Source: Octopus bimaculoides (lineage: Eukaryota). Taken from it: a stretch of DNA of 37,623 bases. Below the pieces are notes generated by a model. The model searched no databases. It saw nothing but the letters and a program-made list of their open reading frames with translations, and was not told where the DNA came from. The translations under genes were made by a program, and so were the position numbers. The stretch lies in the NCBI RefSeq assembly GCF_001194135.2, contig NC_068985.1:4311191-4348813 (forward strand). Reading direction: 5' to 3'. Shown here piece by piece: positions 2,076-37,500 of the stretch. Within the stretch, counting starts at the first letter, position 1, and every line of letters begins with the position of its first letter.

Positions 2076-2313
2076 TTAAAGCTTGTACATATCTTTGTTA
2101 CTCNNNNNNNNNNNNNNNNNNNNNNNNNNNNNNNNNNNNNNNNTATATATATATTATCATATATTATTATTTAAAACTGTTTTATTCGGCTCCGTGCGAC
2201 TTTCGCCAAAACTTAAAATAATACATGTAATTCCTATTAAATGTGTTGAGTGCTTTTTTTCTGTTTTTTTTTTCGTCTACTCACTCGTACATATATATAC
2301 ACATATATATATA

Positions 2314-3960
2314 CGCAACTGGTCCTGTTAGCTTCGCAACTATTCTCCTGAAGTCATGTAAGCAGGTTTTACCGAAACTACAGATACTTTTCCAAAGATT
2401 CCTTGCAAGTGGTAAACTTCCAAAAAAGCTGAAAGAAGACATTATATGCCCTATCCACAAAGGTGGAAGCAGAGCAGAGGCCAAACACTACAGGCCAATC
2501 TCTCTGACTTCACATATCAGTAAAGTCATGGAGAGAAACATCAGAAAGAAGTTGATAATGTTCCGAGAAGAAAATGACCGACTGAACAATACACAGCATG
2601 GCTTCCGTCCAGGAAGAAGCTGCCTCACACACCTCCTACAGCACTATGACTGGGTTTTGAAACAGCTGCTTGATCATTCAGATGTCAGTGTGATATACCT
2701 TGACTTTGCAAAGGCATTTGATTATGGGAGATAATTGCACGATAGGTCATAAGTACGAAACCTTGGCATTGCTGGTAAACAGGGAGAGTGGTCGCATGAC
2801 TTCCTTAAAGACAGACGTCAGGTAGTTGTAGCCAATGACGCCCTTTCTGAGGAAACGGAAATCCGATGTGGCGTCCCCCAGGGAACTGTTCTAGGGTCAT
2901 TACTGTTCATAATACCCTTCTTAGACATGTCCACAGTCATTCGGAAAGCCACTATCACTAGTTATGCCGATGATACAAAATTATCACAGGCAATAAAAAG
3001 CCAAGATGACGTCGTAAGCTTACAGCGGGACTCTGAATTCGAAGTATTAGTGGCCCGAAATAGACAACATGCAGTTTAATGCCGGGAAAATGACAAGCAC
3101 TGCACTATCAACACACGAATGCGCTACAGTCTGCAAATACAGGACACGAATGCATTACAGTCCCAGGATCACATGCAGTGAAAGACTTAGGGATCAGTAT
3201 GTGCTATGACGCATCATTTTATGTGTACATTACCAAGGTGGCAGCACAGCGCAAACAATTAGCAGGATGGATACTGAGGTCCTTCAAGACAAGAGACCAA
3301 GAAACTATGTTGCCACTGTGAAGATATTTGTTCTCAGCCTCCTGGAGTATTATCCCCAGTTGTGGTTACCACATAGTGCCAAACTAATAGCGGAGCTTGA
3401 AGCAGTCCAAGGCTAAAAGATCGAAGCAGTGCAGCAGATGAGCCCCAGGGATAGGCTGAGAAAACTGCAACTTTACTCCCAGGAGCGAAGGCGTGAAATA
3501 TATACAATAATCTACATATGGAAAATTCATGAAGGGCTAGTACTTAATTTTGGTGTTATACAAACGTCAGAACTGGCTGCATTGGTACCATTGGTTGCCA
3601 AAGGTACCATCCACGCCATATAAACTAGTTAGTGCAATATCCTGGGGTACAAAGACCCACAGCTCTTCCATTGCCTGCCACAAAACTTGAGAAATCTGCA
3701 TAAGGTGGAAGTAGATGTCTTCAAGAAAGAACTAGACATCCTCCAATCCACAATACCGGATGAATCAACAGCCCGACATGAGGTGCAGACGAGGGTAGTG
3801 GAATCAAACTCCCTTATACACCAAATAGGCCAGTAGCTGGGACAAACACACATACAAGTGTGGTTATGTGAAACACACAAGTCTGAGTAAATCACAAAGA
3901 CAACGGTACTCCAGTATGACCGCAGCCGCATGGCCTAAAGAAGTAAACGAATAAAAGAAG
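2314..3960 (+). pseudogene. 5'-truncated CR1-group LINE reverse transcriptase relic with frameshifts and stops
   Basis: Motifs PIHKGGS..YRPISLTSHISKVMER, QHGFRPGRSCLTHLL, VIYLDFAKAFD, GVPQGTVLG and YADDTKL (tatgccgatgat, ~2964). The C-terminal segment is at 3630-3835 and the 3'UTR ends near aataaaag (~3950). Confidence 0.93.
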
Positions 3961-5308: not shown

Positions 5309-5939
5309 CAGGTTTTTGTTCAGCATTGCGACATTTTCGCTTGCCTTTGGCAGGTTTTTTGTGTTTGTTCGTTTACGAACAAAATTGTATGTTCATTCTC
5401 TGTGGTAGGCGGGTTCGTTCCTGCCATAGAGTGAAAATTTTTGCTTGGCTTTTTAGCCAGGAAANNNNNNNNNNNNNNNNNNNNNNNNNNNNNNNNNNNN
5501 NNNNNNNNNNNNNNNNNNNNNNNNNNNNNNNNNNNNNNNNNNNNNNNNNNNNNNNNNNNNNNNNNNNNNNNNNNNNNNNNNNNNNNNNNNNNNNNNNNNN
5601 NNNNNNNNNNNNNNNNNNNNNNNNNNNNNNNNNNNNNNNNNNNNNNNNNNNNNNNNNNNNNNNNNNNNNNNNNNNNNNNNNNNNNNNNNNNNNNNNNNNN
5701 NNNNNNNNNNNNNNNNNNNNNNNNNNNNNNNNNNNNNNNNNNNNNNNNNNNNNNNNNNNNNNNNNNNNNNNNNNNNNNNGCTCGGATTACCTAGTGGCTG
5801 GAATTTTTTTCCGTATTTGAACTGTTGTTTTTCTCCCTTTTCTGTCTATCTTTTTATTTGAATCTGTTTTTTTTTCTTTCTTCGCTTTCGTTTTTTTTTT
5901 TTTTACTCTATTCATTCATTTGTGATCTTTTCGAACTTT

Positions 5940-6979
5940 ATGGAAAAAAAAGTGAACAGTGAAGCCACTCTCTTGGAGTGGGATGTTATACCGCCCAAGC
6001 AGTGGGTGAGAGAGACGGAGAAGAGGACAGTGGTCTTGCGGACGTATTCGAGGTCCCGCAATGCCATTGCCCTCTTCAACAAAGAAACGATAGAGAAGGA
6101 GCTGGCGGCTTGTCTGCCAGCGAAGAACTTTTTTGTCTCAAGGGGAGTCAAATTTGCAACGGTGAGGTTGCTGTTTGACTCCCCCGAAGAGGCTGGCACT
6201 GCACCCAGCCACAGGGGGAGCAATTTTGTTTCCTCCCCACTTATTGTGGAAAAAAAATTGAGAGCCTGGGTATGCGGACTTCCCCCAGGTACCGAAGCTG
6301 GATGGATCACAGAGGCCATCCGGTGGGGCTTGGGAGAGAGTGGACCCAGGCTACTAAATGTAGACGTGGCTCCCGCAGTTGACTGGGAAGGGTCAAAGGC
6401 AACTTTGACCCTATGGACCCCGGTAGCTGTGGGAGATATTGTATTTCCGGACTTCCTAAAGATGACTGGCTGCAGGTATCCGGTGATACTTGAGGTTCGG
6501 CAACCTAGATGTCACCGGTGTCTGGAGCCTGGCCATTTGAAGAAGGGTTGCCGCCGGGACACTAAAGTGTCCCAGGAACGGGCACCCGTTGGAGAAAGTA
6601 GTCCTGCTCGGCAGGAAGGAAAAAATGAGGAGGTGGTAGCCCCAACAGATAGAGGTAGAAAGAGGAAGGCGGGCATTAATAATAGCCCGCCGAAACCTCA
6701 AAGAGATGTATAGGTGGAAGAGGGATTGAGTCCCACTGGTAAACCAGAGGACTCCTCCTCTCCCACCGGAAAAAAGAAAAAGAAAAGAAAGAAAAAAGTG
6801 CAAACGAATGTTGAACCACAGCCGGTGGGAATTGTGCCGCCGCCTGTGGAAATGTCTTTCCCTTCTCCGGAGGAAGAAGAAACGTTAGTCTTCTTCTTTA
6901 GAGAGGGGGAGGTAGAAAATGAATTAGAAAAGAGTCTTAGGGGAGAGGCCATGGCCTGCATACAGGATCCCGAGTGGCC
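5940..6979 (+). CDS. Gag-like ORF1 protein with a CCHC zinc knuckle; in-frame TAG at 6711-6713; runs into a gap
   Basis: First ATG at 5940. CHRCLEPGHLKKGC fits Cx2Cx4Hx4C. ORF 6714.. continues in the same frame with a KKKKKRKKK basic patch. Confidence 0.8.
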
Positions 6980-7895: not shown

Positions 7896-9013
7896 GATAA
7901 AAAGCATGCAGCTTAGAAGGAAAGACATTCATCAACGCCATATTGAATTACACAGTTTTCTATTTTAAACGCATAATTGCAATTAACGCGTAATTAATCA
8001 TACAGAACCAAGAAAACAATGAGCTCTTCCCTGCACATAATACACCCAGATTTCTCATTTTTTTTTTTTTTTCATTATCCCTTCCTGGAACATTGGTAGT
8101 TATTTCTAAACGTGGCATTTTTTTTTCATTCTATATAAACTCAAAGAGATCTATCTGTCTTCCCATAATCCTTTCTTCCGGTCGATCATCCCCGTCGCCC
8201 CTCTGTATGACTCATTTATTACATTTAGAGCAGCTTACTACTTTATTCAATTCTAGGAAAAGCACCTACCGACCTCACATCTGTGGCTTTTGTCTTATTT
8301 TTTATTTTGCAATAAAATATCGCAAGTAACACGCACGAATAAAGCAAAAGGAAGCGTCCTTTAGACGAAATTCGGATCGTTGAGCACCTTCGTTATACGG
8401 CTATTTAAACATGCTCAGTAGAAAATAACTGTATAATCTGGAGATACATTAATCGAAGTTGCACTGGATACAGGCCACATTTTATGCAATCAACTGATGA
8501 TTCAATATATTGGAAGAGCTTCAGAATTGTTAATACAAATAATCAATTTATCGAACTTTCAAATAGCTCAGTCTTTTATGCAGGACAAGCGCCAATGTCT
8601 TACCTAAAATTGTCGCCAACATTTATAATTCAGATTGGAGAGATTTATAAAGCTGCTGCATATCAAGCTTTTTACTTACGACTTTGAAAACTTCTGCTTC
8701 ACTCACCAGAACTTCAAATATATTTCAGATCTGATTCGTAGGGAAAAACCAGGACATGGAAAACGAATTTCAGTGTCGACTGAATTTTATAAGCCAATTT
8801 CGAAATTTTAGCCGTTCAGGGAACCCAGGAAACCTCATAAATATTTCACAAATATTATGCTAATTATGGCCAATATCACAGAACATTGTACCCCTACTCA
8901 AGTTTTACCATCACCCTTAAAGCATTTGACAAAGTGTCTATGAAAAACCCCTTATAAATGAAACAATACAGGACAATAATGCTATCGTAGTTTTAACTTC
9001 TCATCAAAGCGCC

Positions 9014-9064
9014 ACCTGACGACATACACCATCTGACGACATGCACCATCTGACGACATACACC
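9014..9064. repeat. 17-bp minisatellite, 3 copies (atctgacgacatacacc)
   Basis: Units at 9014, 9031 and 9048; each unit differs from the consensus at no more than one base. Confidence 0.9.
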
Positions 9065-9172
9065 ACGTTTGTAGAATTGAATCATGACAAAGACTTCAGA
9101 TTGTAATTAATATAAATTCCTTATTTACATTATTTACATTTGACGGATATTTGTCCTCATCTTGTTTGTTGT

Positions 9173-9221
9173 TAACATAACGTTTCGGTTGATATACCCT
9201 CCAGCCTTCATCAGGTGTCTT
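9173..9221 (-). ncRNA. Minimal hammerhead motif, antisense arm of locus A
   Basis: Reverse complement reads ccaagacacCTGATGAaggctggagggtatatcaaccGAAAcgttatgtt, with 2 substitutions from the consensus of the five copies. Confidence 0.7.
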
Positions 9222-9451
9222 GGGGAAATTTCGAACCTGGGTTCCCATTCCTAAGGTATTTTTCCATTGTTATTATTATTAACCACTACGCTACAGGCAG
9301 ATGGCGTAGTGGTTAAGAGCGCGGGCTACTAACTCCAAGATTCCGAGTTCGATTCCTGGCAGTGACCTGAATAATAATAATAATAATAATAACAACAGCA
9401 ACATCGAAAAAATACCTTAGGAATGAGAACCCAGGTACAAAATGTTCCCAA

Positions 9452-9497
9452 GATACCTGATGAAGGCTGGAGGGTATATCAGCTGAAACGTTGTGTT
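9452..9497 (+). ncRNA. Minimal type I hammerhead ribozyme (Penelope-type)
   Basis: gatac-CTGATGA(9457)-a-ggctg[gagggtatat]cagct-GAAA-CGTT-gtgtt. Stem I is gatac/gtgtt, stem III is collapsed to palindromic ACGT, and predicted cleavage is after GUU (9492). Confidence 0.75.
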
Positions 9498-10289
9498 AAC
9501 AACAAACAAGATGAGGACAAATATCCCTCAAATGTAAATAATGTAAATAATGTATCAGCTGTCATGTGGTGCAGGGTGGGAACAACCACAGACTCAAAGA
9601 CACACACACACACACACACCCATAAATATAAATAAATGATGCTGGTGCTATGAAAAATCACTGGTGCTGGTGTCACAACTTTTAAATCTGCAATGTTTGC
9701 TTGTCTAAAGTTTTTGATATTCATTTATCACCTAAAATATTGATGCTGCTGCTTATCATATTTCTTTAATTTCATTTAACAATCCAGTCGTTCATAATTC
9801 CAAGCTCTATGGAATGCATTTATCTTAGAGAGATCTTTCAAAGCCAAGTAAAACAAAACCAGACTTCCACAATTTACTTGACCTCCAGCATGATATTCTG
9901 AAATGTGATGCATTAAATCTAGAGACTTATCATGAGAGTGTTGAATAATATTGTCATTCGAGGAAATAAATCTGTACAAAACCTGTGTGCGTCTGAAGTG
10001 TCATTTCATTCTACCAATCAAAATAATGAGAGAGTGCTGTGATTGTGGCCTGAAGTATTCTGGAAATATGATGATCGGTGGTCTGTAAACCAACTACTGT
10101 AGAACATTTCTGTGGTTGACACTCGGCTGCCCAATTCCTAACATTCCCGCTTCAGTCAGATTGGCTGCTTTTATTTATAAATAATTAATTCGTAAAAATG
10201 TTTAGATATGACGTTTCCTGTACTTAGTTTCTATCGTTCGACATTCATCTGAATTATAAATGGACACGGAAGAAGTAAAGCTTGACAGC

Positions 10290-10700
10290 TTACAAATAAA
10301 TTACATAGACTGGCGTCATTCTATGCTTTCTTTGCAAACATTTCTCTAGAATAAGCTACGTTCTACGGTGCCAGTAAGCAATGGCCAAGTCAATACTTAA
10401 AGATTCACAAATGAAAAACGCTGTAAGCACTCTCCCTTCTTTCCTGGTCCCAAGAATAATATTAAATACCTCACAATATTTTCCCTAATCCCTACGCCTA
10501 ACTGTTCTGCGATTAATTCTGATATCAACGCACTATCAGTAATCAAATCCACCTCTATGTTTTCTGTGGTTTTCTTCAGATGGATCACCGAGATATTCTA
10601 CATACCAAAATTAGAACACTCTCTCTCCTCTGTCTCACGAAGATTATGTTCAAAAATTCATTTTGTTTTCACCCTCAACATACACTCCCGAACTCGGGGT
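10290..10700 (-). pseudogene. Degenerate Tc1/mariner transposase N-terminal fragment
   Basis: TTENIEVDLITDSALISELIAEQLGVG resembles the mariner HTH region (ENIE.V..lI..d.r.ti.elAe.lgis). Confidence 0.5.
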
Positions 10701-10868
10701 CTTGGGGTTAGTAACCACTACACCATATGCCCGTGGCGTAGTGGTTAATGATAATACCATCGGGAAAATACCTTAGGAATGAGAACCCAGGTTCGAAATT
10801 CCCTCAGGATACCTGATGAAGGCTGGAGAGTATATCAACCGAAACATTGTGTTAACAACAAACAACAC
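10685..10868. mobile_element. Foldback tRNA-head / hammerhead element, locus B (opposite orientation, truncated)
   Basis: Centre ccatatgcccgtgg (10723-10736) is flanked by aaccactac/gtagtggtt. CTGATGA is at 10813 and GAAAC at 10841, with ACGT changed to ACAT. Confidence 0.8.
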
Positions 10869-11526
10869 TATCAGTTCAACATACACTCCTTGTTTGTGTG
10901 TGTGTGTGTGTGTGGGCAGGGAGCCATCTCTGACAACTTTCTTTTAAGCACTAGAAACCATTAGAAACCAGTAGAGAACGCTTGCTGATTGCGCATTATA
11001 TTTTTTTTACCAGCGACGACAGTCACAATATATTTTCTGTTTTCTTTTTTTTTTTTTTTTTTTTTGATAGCTAAGCAAGTTGTTTTTTTTTTTTATTTCA
11101 TCTTCCGACTCTCTTAAACATCACCGTTGCAGGCTAATTATCAACAGAGCTAAATTATTCAGCTCTATTTTTAGATTGGCAAGAATTACAACGTTTGTTT
11201 CCACATTACTGAAACTGCGTTGGGATGCAACGAAGTATTAGTTATGCCTGAAAGAGTATTTAGTTAGACGGAGCTGGTTGGACAATGCTACAAATATCAT
11301 CAGTCCATAAGATGTCGTTATAGATGATTCTAGAATGCGCATTGACTGGTATAATTGTTGTCCACAGCTAATAATAATCATTACTGAAGGTGGAGAGTCA
11401 TTAAAGATCGAAGTAACTGAGAGTTTTCCTTACAGAAATGTCAGAAATCGTCACGTAATTACTGCTTCCATGTTAAGTATAATTTACTTCTAATTAGTAA
11501 TTATTCTTAATACTTTTAATGTAGTA

Positions 11527-11745
11527 AGGCGGCAAGCTGACAGAACCGTTAGCACGCCGGACAAAATGCTTAGCTGCATTTCGTCCGTCTTCACGTTCTG
11601 ACTTCGAATTCCACCGAAGTCGACTTTACCTTTCATTCTTTCAGTGGTCAGTAAAATATATACCTGTTATACACTGGGGTCTATATAATCGACTTATCCC
11701 CACCCCCGGACTTGTCTTTATGCCAAAATTTTCAGTCAATATTTC
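11527..11745 (+). mobile_element. SINE-B (tRNA-derived)
   Basis: ggcggcaagctgacagaaccgttagcacgccgg...gtcgactttacctttcat..., the same family as 32947, 34952 and 37283. Confidence 0.88.
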
Positions 11746-12085
11746 TTATATAGCAATGTGCGGCTCTCCTTTTTTAGATGTGTTTTATTCAAAAGACTTA
11801 ATTATTGGGGTATTGCTTAAATAGGTTTATTAATAGGGTTACTATTGGGGTAGAAGTTGATAATTTGAAAATGTACGTTGAGCTACACGTTGAGTAACTG
11901 AACGGATCTTTTATTCAAACAAGTTAGAAACCATCGAGTCATTTCCTCACAGACGGCTGACGCGCATGCTCTTATTTCTTCCACACTCTCACACACTCTT
12001 CCTCTCTCTCTTCCTCTCGTTCTCTCCCGATTTTTCTTTCTCCCCCCCCCCTCTACCTCTCTCTCTCTCGGCTTATGCTTAAACT

Positions 12086-12410
12086 GGCTCTCCGTCGGTT
12101 TCGACGACTCGTGTTCCAGTTGGTCCGATCAACGGAACAGTTTGCTCGTGAAATTAACGTGCAAGTGGCTGAGTACTCCACAGACACGCGTATCCTTAGT
12201 GTAGTCTTCAGTGAGATTCAGCGTGACACAGAAGGTGACAAGACTGGTCCCCTTTGAATTACAGGTACCATTTATTTTCGTCAGCCGAGTGGACTGGGGG
12301 AACACGAAATGAAGTGTCTTGCTCAAGGAAACAATACGTCTGCAGGAATCGAATTCACGACCTTACGATCGTGAAGCGCATACCCTAACCCCTAAGCCAC
12401 GCGCGTTCAC
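12086..12410 (-). mobile_element. SINE-C (tRNA-derived)
   Basis: ccagttggtccgatcaacggaacag...gtgcaagtggctgag, with the reverse-strand B-box ggaatcgaattc near 12346. Confidence 0.88.
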
Positions 12411-14189: not shown

Positions 14190-14940
14190 CGAACCTTTCT
14201 ACATAATCTCTTGGCTTCTAACTAATTTTCTCAAGGTCACTACTTAACACATTCGTAGGACGTGTTGAAAGCTCCACCGAAGTCAGCCACAAACTGCAAG
14301 ATCTCGGCTCATCCATACTTAGTAAAAATAACTACCGTTTGTGCTTGGACGTTGTTATCCTTTCCAACTCGGTCACAGCAGCCCCGACTATCAACTTTTA
14401 CTAACCGAACACATTGCATCCTCTCACAGCCTTCACTGCTTTAAGCTTGCAGCTCCAGATAGTCCTGAGCTATTAACTACTATAATGGGCAACACCTTCT
14501 TCCAGTTTGAAGGGTCCATTTACAAACAACTCTCTCGATTGTTGATGGGGTCAAGCTCGTGAGGCCTATTTGCTGTTACGTACGTGGGCACTCAGCTGCT
14601 GTAACACCTGTACGTTTTTTATGCTAGTTATTTGGATGACATCCTCATATTAGCAACATTTTGCCAGGAAGCTGATAATATATACAATATGTTCAACAAT
14701 AATGATGAAGATATAAAATTCCAAGTGCAGCACGCTGATAACCCTGGTTCCTTACCATTGCTTGATGTTAAGCTCAGACTCAGACTCGAACTCGCGACGA
14801 ACGGATCCATATTTCCACTAACTTTGAGAACAAGTGGCATGCAAGGGCCTGCTTCTATATTATAATTCATCCCTGCCAATTAGAGCTAAGATGGCCTACA
14901 TTAGAAATTAAATTCATAGAATTCACAGTAAATGTAGAGA
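14190..14940 (+). pseudogene. Penelope-like element (PLE) reverse transcriptase relic
   Basis: LLTTIMGNTFFQFEGSIYKQLSRLLMGSS and YLDDILIL...MFNNNDEDIKFQV...SLPLLDV correspond to the PLE RT motifs NYF.F.g.iY.Q..GlaMGSpl, YvDD and F.....LpFLDv. Confidence 0.82.
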
Positions 14941-15959
14941 GGCATGAAGCAAAACACCGACACCATATAATTCGTCAATGGTGCCGCATATATGAAGAGA
15001 TTACCGTTTATAATTCTGCGTGATACTACTCACTAAGGGTCTATCGTGAGCGACTCTATCCATTCCTAAGGTGTCAGCAATCATCTCTGATGTCGAACGG
15101 GCAAATGAAGAACAAAAGCCCACACGCTCTAATTAGTTACATCAGAGCTTTTTCAAAAGCTACTGGCCTGGTCTTTCCCCAGTAGTCTTTCGTTTAAGTT
15201 TTTCGTTCAAGTGTGCAACATAAGAATCATCCTCTTCCCCTTCAGTCCAATAAATTATTTCATTCTTTGTGAGTTTGGTTCAATGTAACCATTAGCTTTC
15301 CGTTTACGATTCGAAGAGCTTTGAATCTCATTTCTTTGGTTTGTAGAGGGATTCACACCGAATGTCTGTCTCAATTCTTTTAAAACCACTCACATTTCTT
15401 CTACTCTCATTTTTTTCTTTTCGGAGCCGTTCCCGACGGTTTGCAATTTATGTCCAGCCTCAATTTGCTCCTGATCGCAGCAAAACAAAAGCGCATACTT
15501 CAGCTTCCTGGTCGCTGGTATCTGAGATACGGGTGAGATGTGACATTTTGGTCATCCTCGGAGCTGCGCTGCAACCGGTGGTGGTATAATCCCTTTATAA
15601 ATAACCGTGCTCCTCATCGAAATGGATTGACAATTAAACTCATGACGTCATGTGACGTAACATGACATCACACACTATAAATACACCATAAACTGATAAA
15701 ACAACGGTTCGGTAATTGTGTGAAACTTACAAAACACATTCTGTCGCCGATAACTGTGTAGACCATAATTGGGAGGTAATTAAATTACAAATCAACCCTT
15801 TAGAAATTAAAAATGAAAAAGACAAAAATAATAAAAATTAAACTTTCTAAAAGAGACACAATACAAACAGGAATATAATGTGGAAATATAAATCAAGTTT
15901 GGATATTTACACAACGAGGCAGAAAAGCCGTCATACAACAAAGGAGAAATAAAAGAAAA

Positions 15960-17232: not shown

Positions 17233-17611
17233 TTTCTTTCCCCTACAATAAATCGGCTGTGTTCTGGCTTGGAGAGTGATGAGCTCCCAAATTTAAAACG
17301 TCCGAGACATATCTTTTGTCACGACGGTGCCTCTTTGACTCAGTCGGAAGTTAAAGGTCCCACCACAACCCTCTGTGGAGGACCTCTAGATACAGACCGT
17401 AAATTTTACCGAAGCCTTAGAAATTATATCAAGTTTGCAAAGTTTACAAAGCAAAGATGATTAAGTGTCTATCGGAACGTGGAACATGCGATAAAGGCGT
17501 CTAAATGAGAATGAGGCACACTTCTAAATTACAAAGAACTTCTGGGAACGGCAGCAATGGTAACGAATGAACAGGGGGAAATCTCAGGACTTAAAATTTA
17601 AGAAGGATAGA

Positions 17612-17760
17612 GTGACGAGCTGACAGAAACGTTAGCACACCGGACGAAATGCTTTGCAGCATTTCGTATGTCTTTACGATTTGAGTTCAAATTCTGCCGA
17701 GATCAATTTTGCCTCTCATCCTTTCGGGGTCAATAAAATAAGTACCAGTTGAGCCCCGTG
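17612..17760 (+). mobile_element. SINE-B
   Basis: gacgagctgacagaaacgttagcacaccggacgaaatgc...catcctttcggggtcaataaaataagtaccag. Confidence 0.85.
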
Positions 17761-17769
17761 ATCTGCTGA

Positions 17770-18570
17770 CCTCGTGTCAAAATTTGAAGCCAAAATTCAG
17801 GAAAGAATTAGGCAAGGTTGTGTACTATCGTTTAGCCTAATTAAGCGACACATTAAGAAGATCTTCAGGAAAGCAGAAGACATTTCAAGAATGTTAATAG
17901 GATGTGCGGACATTAACAACGTTAGATGTTCTGGCATTACTGCCTTATTAACTTCCAGCGTAGGTGACCTACGGAACTTTGTAACAATGGTAAATGACCG
18001 AGGACTACAAAGGAATAATTTATGGTAATCATCAAAAGCCAACAGTCACCCACAAGAAATATTTCAAATGGGAAACAGCCACCAAAGATGATACATCTGG
18101 GATATATGCAATGGGAAAAAGAAGAAATTTAAAGTAAAAATCAAACGAAGAATTGGAAGATAGAATGTAAAGCAATATTAATATGGGAAACAGAAAAAAG
18201 GGTTATTAAAGTGATATTGTTGATTCTAATGTATGGAGATGAAGCGTATATATTAACAAAAGTATTATCAAATAAATTAGAAGCCGTTTACATGCGAACA
18301 TACAGAACAATTTTGATAATATGAAGATATAACTCAAAGCCTACGGTTTATTGCGAAGAACGGCAAAAACCAATAGTCATCATCAAAGGGACAAAGCTAA
18401 AATGTTTTAGACACTTAATTAGGGAAAATGGTTTAGGGAGGTTGTTCACAGAAAGGAAAATTAAGAGGGAAAGAGAAACGCAAAAACAAGAATTATGAGG
18501 GCGGATAATATTATGAAGTGGATAGATTAAAAATAAGCGCTTATATAAGGACAGTACAAAGATACAAGAT
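17770..18570 (+). pseudogene. RTE-clade LINE relic, 3' part (RT core and C-terminus)
   Basis: RIRQGCVLS...IGCADINNVRCSGITALL corresponds to GVRQGCvlSP...iGG.nINNLRYADDTaLL. LMYGDEAYILTK..KLEA corresponds to LLYG.E.WTl...kLeA. Confidence 0.8.
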
Positions 18571-19569: not shown

Positions 19570-20713
19570 TTAACAGTATAAACGTTGCCATAGTAACGAA
19601 GCTAAAGCACGAAGAGTGAAGCCGCTTGGCTGCACAGATTGGCTGTAAACTCTAGTGTGCATGAAAACTAAGTCATAACATTCTAGCTCACTTCCACTAT
19701 TGACAGAAGTGCTTGGAAGGAAGGTGTGTAGCGTATGATCGTCGCATTGACCATTACAGAAGAGGTTGAGCAGAGAATCTGCATTAAAGTTTGCCAAGAA
19801 CTTGCCGGTTACCTGCTCAGAGGCCTACGCAAAGTTTTCAAAAAGTTTTCATCGTTCACGACACAATCAAGATCTTGTGCAACTGAAAACCGAGTGTCTT
19901 TTTGATCAGCTGAAAGCAGTTTTGGCACAAACTTGGCAGACACGCATCTCATACTCAAATCTTCAGTGATAATATACTAAAACTCTAACTTCTATCACTA
20001 ACCACAATTATATTTTTTATATTTATTGTGTGCGAAAGATTAATCTCTCAACGAACAATTATTTGATCAAATCACTTAAATACATCTTTAGAATAAGATA
20101 ACCGTCGTCCACTTGATTTTCATACTCAAATAGAAACAGGAGCCTTATTCATTTAATTTAATATATTATGATCTAATGTGGACAATTAAGATTTCAAGAC
20201 GCAAACTCAAACATTTATAGAACAAATTTTTTTTCATGGTCACTCTATATATATTCTTACTATTATTTTAACACTAATCTGCACGTCCGTTGATAACTCA
20301 CGGATGGTGAATCGACAATTTCCCCTTACAGCTGCTCGCACATCTGCGATGTTTTTCTCAGTTCTGCAGGTTTCGAGTCTCCCAGAACTTTCGTCAATAT
20401 TGACATCTTTTGGCCACTTTTGGTACACTTGTATGCATCTCATACACTCCTCTCCATACACTTTCGACAACTATGCGTAGTCCTCTGAGCAAGTATCGTC
20501 ATGGCAACTTTCTCTACGATGGTCAATACGCAGATCACACGCTACACAAGTACCTTCCAAGCACTGCTGTGAACAGCGGAAGTAAACTAGAAAGCTAAAA
20601 CTTAGTGTGCATACACAGTAGAGAACAAGGTCAATGTTCGCCAAGCAGTTTCAATCTGCGTGTTGTAGCTTCGTTACTATGGCAACAATCTGGATACTTA
20701 TTAACCGGAGCTC

Positions 20714-24934: not shown

Positions 24935-25235
24935 TTTTGTGTTGTCGAACAAATTCCACCGAGGTCTACTTTGCCTTTCATTCTTGCGAGGTCGATAAAA
25001 TAAGTACCAGTTGAGTACTGGGGTCGATGTAATCGACCTAACAGCTCCTCTCCCATAGTGCAAGCCTTGCACCAACATTTGAAACAATATCACATGCAGC
25101 TGCAACAGCAAGAACAACAGTAGATCCCTCCAGAAAAACACAAGCCAAATCTCCCTCATATCCCAATCTACGGTGTTTTTTTTTAATAGCAAGATACATT
25201 GTATAATGTAGTCCTAGATACATTATGTCCAATAC
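24935..25235 (+). mobile_element. SINE-B with a long-tail variant
   Basis: aattccaccgaggtctactttgcctttcat...ggggtcgatgtaatcgac. A similar tail fragment occurs at ~13580-13680. Confidence 0.7.
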
Positions 25236-27354: not shown

Positions 27355-27572
27355 CATCTTGGTGTATGCTCACCATCCAAGATTCTGAGTTCGTACCTAA
27401 ATCCCTATTATTTGAGTAGGCGTAGAGTGCTGAACTGGTACTTATATTATCGACCTCGAAAAGACGAACGGCAAAGTCGACCTCGTCGGAATTTGAACTC
27501 AGAGCATAATGACGGACGAATCGCCGCTGAGCATTTTCGCCAGCGTGCTAACGATTTCGCCAGCTCGCTACC
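27355..27572 (-). mobile_element. SINE-B
   Basis: ctggtacttatattatcgacctcgaaaag...gtgctaacgatttcgccagctcgc. Confidence 0.85.
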
Positions 27573-27649
27573 TTGTACAAGCAGAATATTAAACGTTCTA
27601 CTCTTTTCTTATATCTTTCTTATACGGTTTGTGTCGCATGAGGGAAAAA

Positions 27650-27820
27650 GATTGGCCCTCCGTCGGTTACGACGACGAGTATTCCAGTTGAACCGATCAA
27701 CGGAACTGCCCGCTCGTGAAATTAATGTGCAAGTGGCTGAGCACTCCAGACTTAACATAGTACTCAGGGATATTCAGCCTAACACAGAATGTGGCAAGGT
27801 TGATATACGGGTACCACTCA
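27650..27820 (-). mobile_element. SINE-C 3' part, interrupted by the foldback element
   Basis: ccgtcggttacgacgacgagtattccagttgaaccgatcaacgg...gtgcaagtggctgagcactcc. Confidence 0.82.
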
Positions 27821-28098
27821 TTATTTACATTATTTACATTTGTCCTCATCTTGTTTGTTGTTAATACAACGTTTCGTCTGATATACCCTCCAGCCTTCAT
27901 CAGGTGTCTTGGGGAAATTTCGAACCTGGGTTCTCATTCCTAATGCATTTTTCCGATGTTATTCGAAATTTCTCCATGTTCGAAATTTCCTCAAGACACC
28001 TGATGAAGGCTGGAAAGTACATCAGCCGAAAGGTTGTGTTAACAACAAGCAAGATGAGGACAAATATCCGTCAAATGTAAATAATGAACATAATTCCT
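27820..28098. mobile_element. Foldback hammerhead element, locus C (centre deleted)
   Basis: The left arm (27820-27960) is the reverse complement of the right arm (27975-28098) over most of its length. CTGATGA occurs at 28000 on + and as tcatcag at ~27897 on -. Confidence 0.85.
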
Positions 28099-32940: not shown

Positions 32941-32946
32941 TATATT

Positions 32947-33180
32947 TGGCGGCGAGCTGGCAGAACCGTTTGCACGCTGGACGAAATGCTTAGCGGTATT
33001 TCCCCTGCCGCTACATTCTGAGATCAAATTCCTCCGAGGTAGACTTTGTCTTTCATCCTTTCGGGGTCGATTAAATAAGTACCAGTGAAACACTGGGGTC
33101 GATGTAATCGACTAGTCTCCTCCTCCAAAATTCCAGGCCTTGTGCTTTTAGTAGAAAAGATTATTATTACTACTACTATT
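32947..33180 (+). mobile_element. SINE-B
   Basis: ggcggcgagctggcagaaccg...ctttcatcctttcggggtcgattaaataagtaccag...ggggtcgatgtaatcgac. Confidence 0.92.
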
Positions 33181-34369: not shown

Positions 34370-34752
34370 TGTTGTTGGCACTCCGTCACTTACGACGTCG
34401 AGGGTTCCAGTTGATCCGATCAACAGAACAGCCTGTTCGTGAAAATAACGTGCACGTGGCTGAGAACTCCACAGACACGTGTACCCTTAACGTAGTTCTC
34501 GGAGATATTCAGCGTGACACAGTGTGACAAGGCTGACCTTTTGAATTACAGGCGCAACAGAAACAGGAAGAAAGAGTGAGAGAAAGTTGTGGTGAAAGAG
34601 TACAGCAGGGTTCGCCACCATCCTCTGCCGGAGCCTCGTGGAGCTTTAGGTATTTTCGCTCAATAAACACTCACAACGCCCGGTCTGGGAATCGAAACCG
34701 CGATCCTATGACCGCGGATCCGCTGCCCTAACCACTGGGCCATTGCGCCTCC
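34370..34752 (-). mobile_element. Full-length SINE-C with 14-bp TSD
   Basis: Flanks are acacaattcaacat (34356-34369) and acacaattcgacat (34753-34766). The head and the (caa)n tail are intact. Confidence 0.93.
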
Positions 34753-34951
34753 ACACAATTCGACATAACAAGAGATGAACTTGCAGCTAGCTAAGGATGA
34801 GAGTTGAAAATGTTTCGCAGACAAAGCCTATTCGCATCACATCGCCGCTACATGAGCGTCACACACTCTCGGTCCGTTCCTCTTTTATGTGTAAAATATG
34901 ATAGCGAATTTGAGCGAGTGGAACCGATATTTATATCTAAACAGTCCTAGG

Positions 34952-35150
34952 GTGACCAACTGGCAGAATCGTTAGCACGCCGGAGAAAATGCTTAGTAGC
35001 ACTTCGTCCGTCTTTACGTTTTTGGCGTCGACTTCACCTTTCATCATTTCGGGGTCGGTAAAATAAGTACCAGTTGATTACTGGAATCGATGTAACCGAC
35101 TTACTCCCTCCTCCGAAATCACTGGCCTTCTTACAAAATCTGAAACCTAT
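34952..35150 (+). mobile_element. SINE-B
   Basis: ctggcagaatcgttagcacgccgg...catttcggggtcggtaaaataagtaccag. Confidence 0.87.
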
Positions 35151-37241: not shown

Positions 37242-37500
37242 CAGTGGTTCCCAACCTGGGGTCCACAAAGGTAGCAATGGGGAAGGCGGCGAGCTGGGAG
37301 AATCGCTAGCAAGCTGGGAGAAATGCTTAACGGGATGTCATCTGTCTTTACGTTCTAAGTTCAAATCACGCCGAGGTCGATTTTGTTTGTCATCCTTCCG
37401 TGATCGATAAATTAAGTACCAGTTGCGTACTGGGGTCGATCTAATTCACTGGCTCCCTTCCCAAAAAAATTTCAGGTAGTAATGAGGGTCCGTGAACTAA
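37242..37500 (+). mobile_element. hAT-type MITE 5' end interrupted by a SINE-B (37283-37473)
   Basis: cagtggttcccaacctggggtcc is a hAT-like terminus. The SINE is flanked by an imperfect TSD, aggtagcaatgggg / aggtagtaatgaggg. Confidence 0.7.

Follow-up and report, generated by a model that had tools for sequence, protein, structure and literature searches.

The foldback at locus A and its tRNA-like head

The window analysed here is a stretch of 37,623 nucleotides from Octopus bimaculoides (NCBI RefSeq assembly GCF_001194135.2, contig NC_068985.1, positions 4,311,191 to 4,348,813 of the forward strand); all positions below count from its first letter. At positions 9116–9555 lies a 440-bp foldback, termed locus A, which consists of two head-to-head copies of a short interspersed repeat. 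Both copies carry a motif resembling the minimal hammerhead ribozymes of Penelope-like elements (PLEs), and one begins with a tRNA-like head. Two further loci of the same family, B and C, are present in the window.

The complementary arms of locus A occupy 9116–9281 and 9390–9555; they are 166 nt each, 89% complementary, and separated by 108 nt. An initial annotation, made from the sequence alone, had placed a foldback of about 430 bp at 9121–9553; the structure is real and its true extent is slightly wider. The left copy (9116–9291, minus strand) was delimited by the inverted repeat and by alignment of the arms. It starts with a 13-nt A-box fragment (9279–9291, minus strand) and then jumps to an (AAT)n-like spacer, the rest of the tRNA-like head being missing; the body, the hammerhead motif and a (AATGTAAAT)n tail (about 9121–9146, minus strand) follow. 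Its motif (9174–9219, minus strand) reads GACAC CTGATGA A GGCTGG..TCAACC GAAA CG TT ATGTT, and the predicted cut falls between 9179 and 9178 on that strand. This agrees with the annotated short inverted arm that lacks the tRNA body and keeps the hammerhead.

The right copy, on the plus strand, is the more complete one. The leader and tRNA-like head (9292–9369) contain an A box at 9302–9312 (TGGCGTAGTGG) and a B box at 9345–9355 (GAGTTCGATTC), and are followed by an (AAT)n spacer (9370–9392) and by the body (9393–9451), in which a second B-box-like sequence of the other copies, GGTTCGAAAT, is mutated to GGTACAAAAT. The hammerhead motif at 9452–9497 reads GATAC CTGATGA A GGCTGG..TCAGCT GAAA CG TT GTGTT. 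The 3′ tail (9498–9555) is 58 nt long and ends in 2.5 units of (AATGTAAAT). All the parts that had been annotated in this arm, namely the A box, B box, (AAT)n, hammerhead and 9-nt-repeat tail, were found at their places, and the predicted cut after GUU at 9492 was reproduced, as GAAACGTT ends at 9492. In the family as a whole, the 3′ module is about 150 nt long, running from GGAAAAATACC to the tail, and the minimal type I hammerhead lies 59 nt from its end.

The two copies meet at the palindrome centre (9279–9316, unstranded), where the 13-nt sequences TTAACCACTACGC / GCGTAGTGGTTAA form a perfect inverted repeat that encloses a 12-nt loop (9292–9303). This loop corresponds to the right arm's 5′ leader and is located some 10 nt upstream of the A box; the same junction is also present at locus B. 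Folding of the whole of locus A is predicted to give a hairpin some 170 bp long (−266 kcal/mol); in a read-through transcript both motifs would be buried in it. The Rfam model MIR2606 scored 49.6 bits against a threshold of 139.7 at 9232–9439 (minus strand), the central part of the foldback. We rejected this match as a known microRNA, as the score is far below the threshold and reflects the long hairpin.

The A and B boxes of the right arm are 43 nt apart, a tRNA-like spacing. The Rfam tRNA model was colinear with 9302–9359 (model positions 8–63, covering the D, anticodon and T arms), but with only 12.8 bits and E = 2.4 in a search of 91 nt, and ARAGORN called no tRNA. Judging from these sequence features, we read the head as a probable, degenerate derivative of a tRNA with its putative promoter boxes retained, not as a tRNA gene. 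The plus strand has no T4 run until 9680, in line with the annotated absence of such a run before 9553; hence a transcript of RNA polymerase III (Pol III) could span the whole unit. The proposal of a non-autonomous element with a Pol III-type head was thus borne out in the form of a dispersed non-coding repeat headed by a tRNA-like Pol III promoter.

Two features border the locus. A 17-nt tandem repeat (CCATCTGACGACATACA × 3.2) is located at 9012–9065, 50 nt upstream. On the other side, the flank after the tail, TATCAGCTGTCATGTGGTG (9553–9571), resembles the 3′ half of the hammerhead, TATCAGCTGAAACGTTGTG (9477–9495), at 79% and includes a CAGCTG variant otherwise seen only in the right arm of locus A; it is either a partial second copy or a chance likeness.

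Loci B and C and the insertion habit of the family

A profile built from the arms matched exactly five arms and one head fragment, distributed over three loci, and nothing else in the window. Identity among the five arms was 84–93%. The two arms of locus A were 90% identical, no closer than arms of different loci (85–93%).

Locus B (10675–10889, plus strand) is bounded by a perfect 14-bp target-site duplication, TCAACATACACTCC (10675–10688 and 10876–10889), and is therefore the product of a retroposition event. Between the duplicates lie an inverted tRNA-head fragment (10689–10724), a spacer or leader (10725–10735), and a short-head arm on the plus strand (10736–10875) with its hammerhead motif at 10808–10853 (plus strand). 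The element stops 22 nt past the motif, or 27 nt past the predicted cut, and ACTATCAGT replaces the usual repeat tail. At locus C, the left arm (27819–27964, minus strand) is 5′-truncated, carries a motif at 27863–27908 (minus strand) and retains its tail. The right arm (27965–28098, plus strand) is 5′-truncated within the body, carries a motif at 27995–28040 (plus strand) and runs into an assembly gap, one of many in the window. These two truncated arms meet at a distinct junction of their own. No target-site duplication was found flanking locus A, where the search gave only a 7-mer at chance level.

Head-to-head inversion was observed at 3/3 loci, and the junctions are of two or more kinds. 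Across the inversion junction, the minus strand of A runs colinear with the plus strand of B (89% over 154 nt, no gaps), and the helix II variant CAACC is common to both. Because A and B share this junction, the palindromic composite must itself have been copied, at least twice, and head-to-head joining must have occurred at least twice independently. The initial annotation had noted that PLEs often make inverted terminal copies; this is indeed a known PLE trait (PMC8557442). PLE insertions are described with an inverted 5′-truncated copy beside the main copy, variable end extensions and a microsatellite bias (PMC8557442), and pairs of minimal hammerheads on opposite strands, 100–700 bp apart, have already been recorded (PMC4209133). 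Locus B directly adjoins a (TG)n run and locus A lies about 40 nt from a (CA)n run; as the genome is microsatellite-rich, this adjacency is weak support for a PLE.

The same arrangement tells against the label of retrozyme that had been given to the element. No head-to-tail, same-strand tandem of the unit was detected in the window, and the motifs at loci A and C stand on opposite strands, so that no unit could be excised from one transcript.

We also considered a foldback DNA transposon or miniature inverted-repeat transposable element whose terminal inverted repeats would be the 166-bp arms, as well as an inverted duplication of local origin. The long, nearly perfect terminal inverted repeats of locus A and the strong hairpin that they would form are what such an origin predicts. 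However, locus B, with its partial palindrome, is flanked by a 14-bp target-site duplication of its own, the junction at locus C is a different one, and the ends differ between loci, while locus A lacks a short target-site duplication. Also at odds with this explanation are the arms of A, which are no more alike than arms of different loci, the repeat tails of the kind seen in short interspersed elements (SINEs), and an arm that begins with a Pol III head. Being contradicted by loci B and C, the foldback transposon was rejected, and we regard this whole explanation as highly improbable.

The hammerhead motif and its decay

The sequence CTGATGA...GAAAC was seen 4 times in the window against 0.24 expected. 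The five motifs all stem from one repeat and so were counted as a single event. Together they yield the consensus GACAC-CUGAUGA-A-GGCUGG-AGGGUAUA-UCAGCC-GAAA-CG-UU-GUGUU, and the consensus that the initial annotation had drawn from the five copies proved correct. We used a strict minimal-hammerhead descriptor, which required the core, at least 5 pairs in each of helices I and II, a palindromic helix III and a U followed by H, and which permitted a bulge. The descriptor gave one match in the window, in the right arm of locus A, and none in 600 first-order Markov versions of the window (35-kb windows).

The core CUGAUGA/GAAA is intact in 5/5 copies. Helix II of the consensus (A + GGCUGG/UCAGCC) has 6 bp with the pair G10.1-C11.1, and a bulged A stands between A9 and G10.1 in all five copies. 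At the place of helix III, the consensus and 3/5 copies have the palindrome ACGU followed by U, the others having ACAU at locus B and AGGU in the right arm of C. Helix I (GACAC/GUGUU) has 5 pairs including a G·U, and 92% of its cells are paired. The predicted minimum-free-energy fold of the consensus includes helices I and II.

These features are those of the minimal type I hammerheads of PLEs (Cervera and de la Pena 2014, PMC4209133; Lunse et al. 2017). Shared with them are the CUGAUGA/GAAA core with an extra nucleotide between A9 and G10.1, the G10.1-C11.1 pair, a 6-bp helix II, an open 5-bp helix I, and the absence of a helix III of their own, a palindromic CG allowing action only as a dimer. 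PLE minimal hammerheads, which occur in thousands of dispersed copies per genome, were reported with a helix II that is long and a helix I that is short, and the features that emerged among them from outside the search descriptor include G10.1-C11.1 and a palindromic 15.2-16.2 (PMC4209133). Compared with the list in that study, the octopus consensus has all four of the non-random PLE marks. Unlike the PLE motifs, which belong to the terminal repeats of reverse-transcriptase-encoding elements, it sits in a short element headed by a tRNA-like Pol III promoter. At the level of sequence, the motif behaves as a PLE-type minimal hammerhead.

A number of results weigh against a functional ribozyme module of PLE type. 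No Rfam hammerhead model matched the window, the locus or the 71-nt motif alone at the gathering score or at E ≤ 10; we note beside this failure that the consensus is a variant without a helix III of its own. Helices I and II show no compensatory changes, and no pair is changed on both sides among the five copies. Over these five copies, 90.9% of the cells are paired against 91.7% in shuffles, and substitutions break pairs as often as in the shuffles. Of the conservation and covariation that had been put forward as a check, the conserved core stood (5/5 copies), the match to the Rfam models did not, and covariation is absent from the five copies. Even the unchanged core is only marginal evidence: it comprises 55 cells, and from 17 substitutions in 285 alignment cells about 3 would be expected there. 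Moreover, each copy deviates from the consensus stems, and neither motif at locus A equals the consensus exactly. All pairs are kept only in the right arm of A, with two wobbles, where G·U replaces G-C at 10.1-11.1. The left arm of A has a C·A mismatch in helix II and another at the first pair of helix I. The locus B motif has a C·A mismatch in helix II and has lost the helix III palindrome, and the left arm of C shows a G·A mismatch in helix II and also a helix I mismatch. The motif in the right arm of C pairs perfectly in helices I and II, and its helix III has a non-palindromic GG. Finally, minimal hammerheads of PLEs cleave poorly in vitro (PMC4209133).

Several of the stem deviations fall at CpG sites. 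In our reading, the founder carried a complete minimal hammerhead and the copies in the window are decaying neutrally. As the motif lacks a helix III of its own, cleavage would be possible only as an RNA dimer; by simple energy rules, the double-hammerhead pairing is not favoured (calculated −24.3 kcal/mol, against −27.2 for two separate monomers). Copies also retain 59 nt downstream of the cut site, so the RNA that was reverse-transcribed had not been cut there and cleavage is not required before reverse transcription. It is at least as likely that the motif serves as a passenger or recognition structure as that it is a processing device.

The same data bear on the possibility that the repeat is real and its CTGATGA...GAAA arrangement never was a ribozyme. 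Such a coincidence would account for the lack of an Rfam match and of covariation, and it is made easier by there being one independent family only and by a first-stage scan of many windows, which selects coincidences of this type. It does not sit well with the four features beyond the core search, all of which are present, or with the PLE-like insertion habit of the element in which the motif lies. Given the descriptor result, with no match in the 600 simulated windows, pure chance is unlikely for the motif, and we assign a low probability to this explanation overall.

Proposed mobilisation, related systems and neighbouring elements

By a small measure, we lean towards locus A being one insertion of a non-autonomous octopus retroposon, in head-to-head copies, that combines a tRNA-like head with a PLE-type hammerhead module and was driven by a PLE. 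That a PLE would have mobilised it via a PLE-derived terminal module is what we infer by analogy with the PLE systems cited above. Octopus genomes contain PLEs, and these have expanded there (PMC13282606; PMC8967140).

In the mechanism proposed here, Pol III would start about 10 nt upstream of the A box, read through the T4-free unit and stop in flanking DNA. The 3′ module, taken from or mimicking a PLE terminal repeat, would be recognised by the reverse transcriptase and endonuclease of a PLE. A template switch would take place at the end of first-strand synthesis, near the RNA 5′ end; the palindrome centre is the leader, about where Pol III would start. Integration would then give inverted head-to-head structures as PLE insertions do, and the palindrome would later have been copied as a unit at least once (loci A and B). 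The ribozyme could cut, after GUU, only if two RNAs paired through the palindrome ACGU. Direct support in the window is limited to the inverted insertion, seen at 3/3 loci, and to the re-copying of the palindrome; we infer the Pol III transcription, the use of PLE enzymes via the borrowed module, and the template switch at the RNA 5′ end.

The main competing account is an ordinary tRNA-derived SINE that depends on a long interspersed element (LINE). Its 3′ stem and (AATGTAAAT)n tail would be read by an L2/CR1/RTE-like LINE, the head-to-head forms would be products of twin priming, or of priming at the two nicked strands, and the hammerhead motif would be a relic or a coincidence. Two observations favour it at the expense of the PLE-driven retroposon. 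SINEs dependent on LINEs of the L2 or CR1 type typically end in short tandem repeats, and the tail of this family is of that sort. A LINE reverse-transcriptase remnant is present in the window (2231–3318, plus strand). Locus B, which has no tail yet has a target-site duplication, also counts against the PLE-driven retroposon; no simple model accounts for both. In favour of a LINE, the 14-bp duplication is within the usual LINE range, locus B has the RNA 5′ end at its junction, a topology compatible with twin priming, and LINEs of the RTE, CR1 and Dong types are the most abundant autonomous elements in octopus (PMC13282606).

However, twin priming does not give two arms that both have a 3′ tail, as in A and C, and head-to-head joining at all three loci would be unusual for LINE-driven SINEs. 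A relic or coincidental motif is also hard to reconcile with a descriptor never met in the simulated windows and with the PLE-specific extras, and the repeat profile showed no similarity to the LINE remnant in the window or to the related LINE fragments L002 and L003. On balance, we consider dependence on a LINE rather unlikely. If the tail were shared with a LINE, what remained of the finding would be an old SINE whose motif is a relic or due to chance.

Searches beyond the window yielded little, and no PLE sharing the 3′ end of the family was among the sequences covered. Two conserved stretches of the repeat had no exact match in metagenome, prokaryote-genome and viral DNA collections, and a repeat-derived peptide matched, at 86%, one UniRef entry only; this entry is from Octopus bimaculoides and points to an octopus genome as the host. 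A locus of Argonauta hians and two loci of another eukaryote from ENA (63 kb in total), which had been reached via the LINE reverse transcriptase, contained no copy of the element. Within the window, the stretch 14260–15020 (plus strand) resembles a degraded Penelope-type reverse transcriptase across three frames (LDVVS..., YLDDI..., LPLLDV...). With no Pfam match and no homologue in the protein search, it was not counted as a PLE.

Comparison with described systems placed the family among known kinds. The SMalpha and Sjalpha elements of Schistosoma (Ferbeyre et al. 1998; Laha et al. 2000; summarised in PMC6765202 and PMC8490949) are likewise short, non-coding and high-copy, are apparently transcribed by Pol III and contain a type I hammerhead. 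The hammerhead of SMalpha is canonical, with loops and a short helix III, and SMalpha is often found in tandem arrays in which the ribozyme releases monomers, whereas the octopus element has the minimal PLE-type motif and is head-to-head, with no tandem array in the window. The initial annotation knew of no described family with this combination and left its novelty unconfirmed. SMalpha and Sjalpha, as apparently Pol III-transcribed SINE-like elements that carry hammerheads, are a precedent (PMC6765202), so a Pol III head joined to a hammerhead is not new.

Animal non-LTR retrozymes, those without long terminal repeats (Cervera and de la Pena 2020, PMC7229834; Li et al. 2026 preprint, 10.64898/2026.07.22.740005), are also non-autonomous and hammerhead-bearing, and have been proposed to derive from PLE terminal repeats and to use PLE enzymes. 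They differ in forming head-to-tail tandem repeats that give circular RNAs and in having no tRNA head; the octopus element has no direct tandem. The octopus SINEs OK, OR1 and OR2 (Ohshima and Okada 1994, cited in PMC4758252), compared by description, share with it the tRNA-type head, the octopus host and the high copy number; OR2 is described as a CORE SINE. The family may be one of these SINEs described in 1994, and it is probably already in octopus repeat libraries.

We regard the octopus repeat family as real and as a variant of kinds already described; it does not make up a new class. PLE passengers are a current idea, and a SINE riding on PLEs is plausible. Our literature search found no report of a hammerhead in a cephalopod or octopus SINE, and no tRNA-headed SINE tied to a PLE. 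We put forward, only tentatively and with more doubt than confidence, that this would be the first explicit case of a tRNA-headed SINE parasitising a PLE instead of a LINE, its Pol III head being joined to a terminal module of a PLE together with the minimal hammerhead, and inserting as re-copyable palindromes.

Such a case would matter in several respects. SINEs are usually described as passengers of LINEs, and a PLE-based tRNA-headed family would extend the partnership to a third retroelement class. Small, abundant and driven by Pol III, it would in addition serve as a model for the role of the minimal hammerheads of PLEs and for the origin of their inverted insertions. SINEs are the main lineage-specific genome expansion in octopuses, making up about 12% of an octopus genome, so the enzyme that drives them bears on genome growth; the density observed here is three loci in 37 kb. 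In read-through transcripts, the palindromes would furthermore give rise to perfect RNA hairpins of 170 bp in large numbers, and RNA editing or small-RNA pathways are candidates for acting on these.

Other mobile-element remnants accompany the family in the window. The LINE reverse-transcriptase remnant mentioned above extends over three frames with a Pfam RVT_1 match, and its closest relatives, which include a protein of the octopod Argonauta hians, are 60–67% identical. An intact open frame of 283 aa at 5862–6710 (plus strand) has a weak CCHC zinc-knuckle match and is possibly a retroelement gag-like or ORF1 protein. A short frame at 20243–20470 (minus strand) resembles the N-terminal portion of a mariner-type transposase by our reading only, with no Pfam match.

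A second, commoner SINE-like repeat is also dispersed in the window, with at least seven copies and B-box sequences of the GAGTTCAAATTCC type. Six copies are on the plus strand (11525–11710, 17608–17793, 24944–25050, 32945–33130, 34948–35113 and 37282–37467) and one is on the minus strand (27426–27574), with 3′ parts at 12085–12231, 27653–27799 and 34376–34522. One copy of this second repeat ends about 20 nt before locus C.

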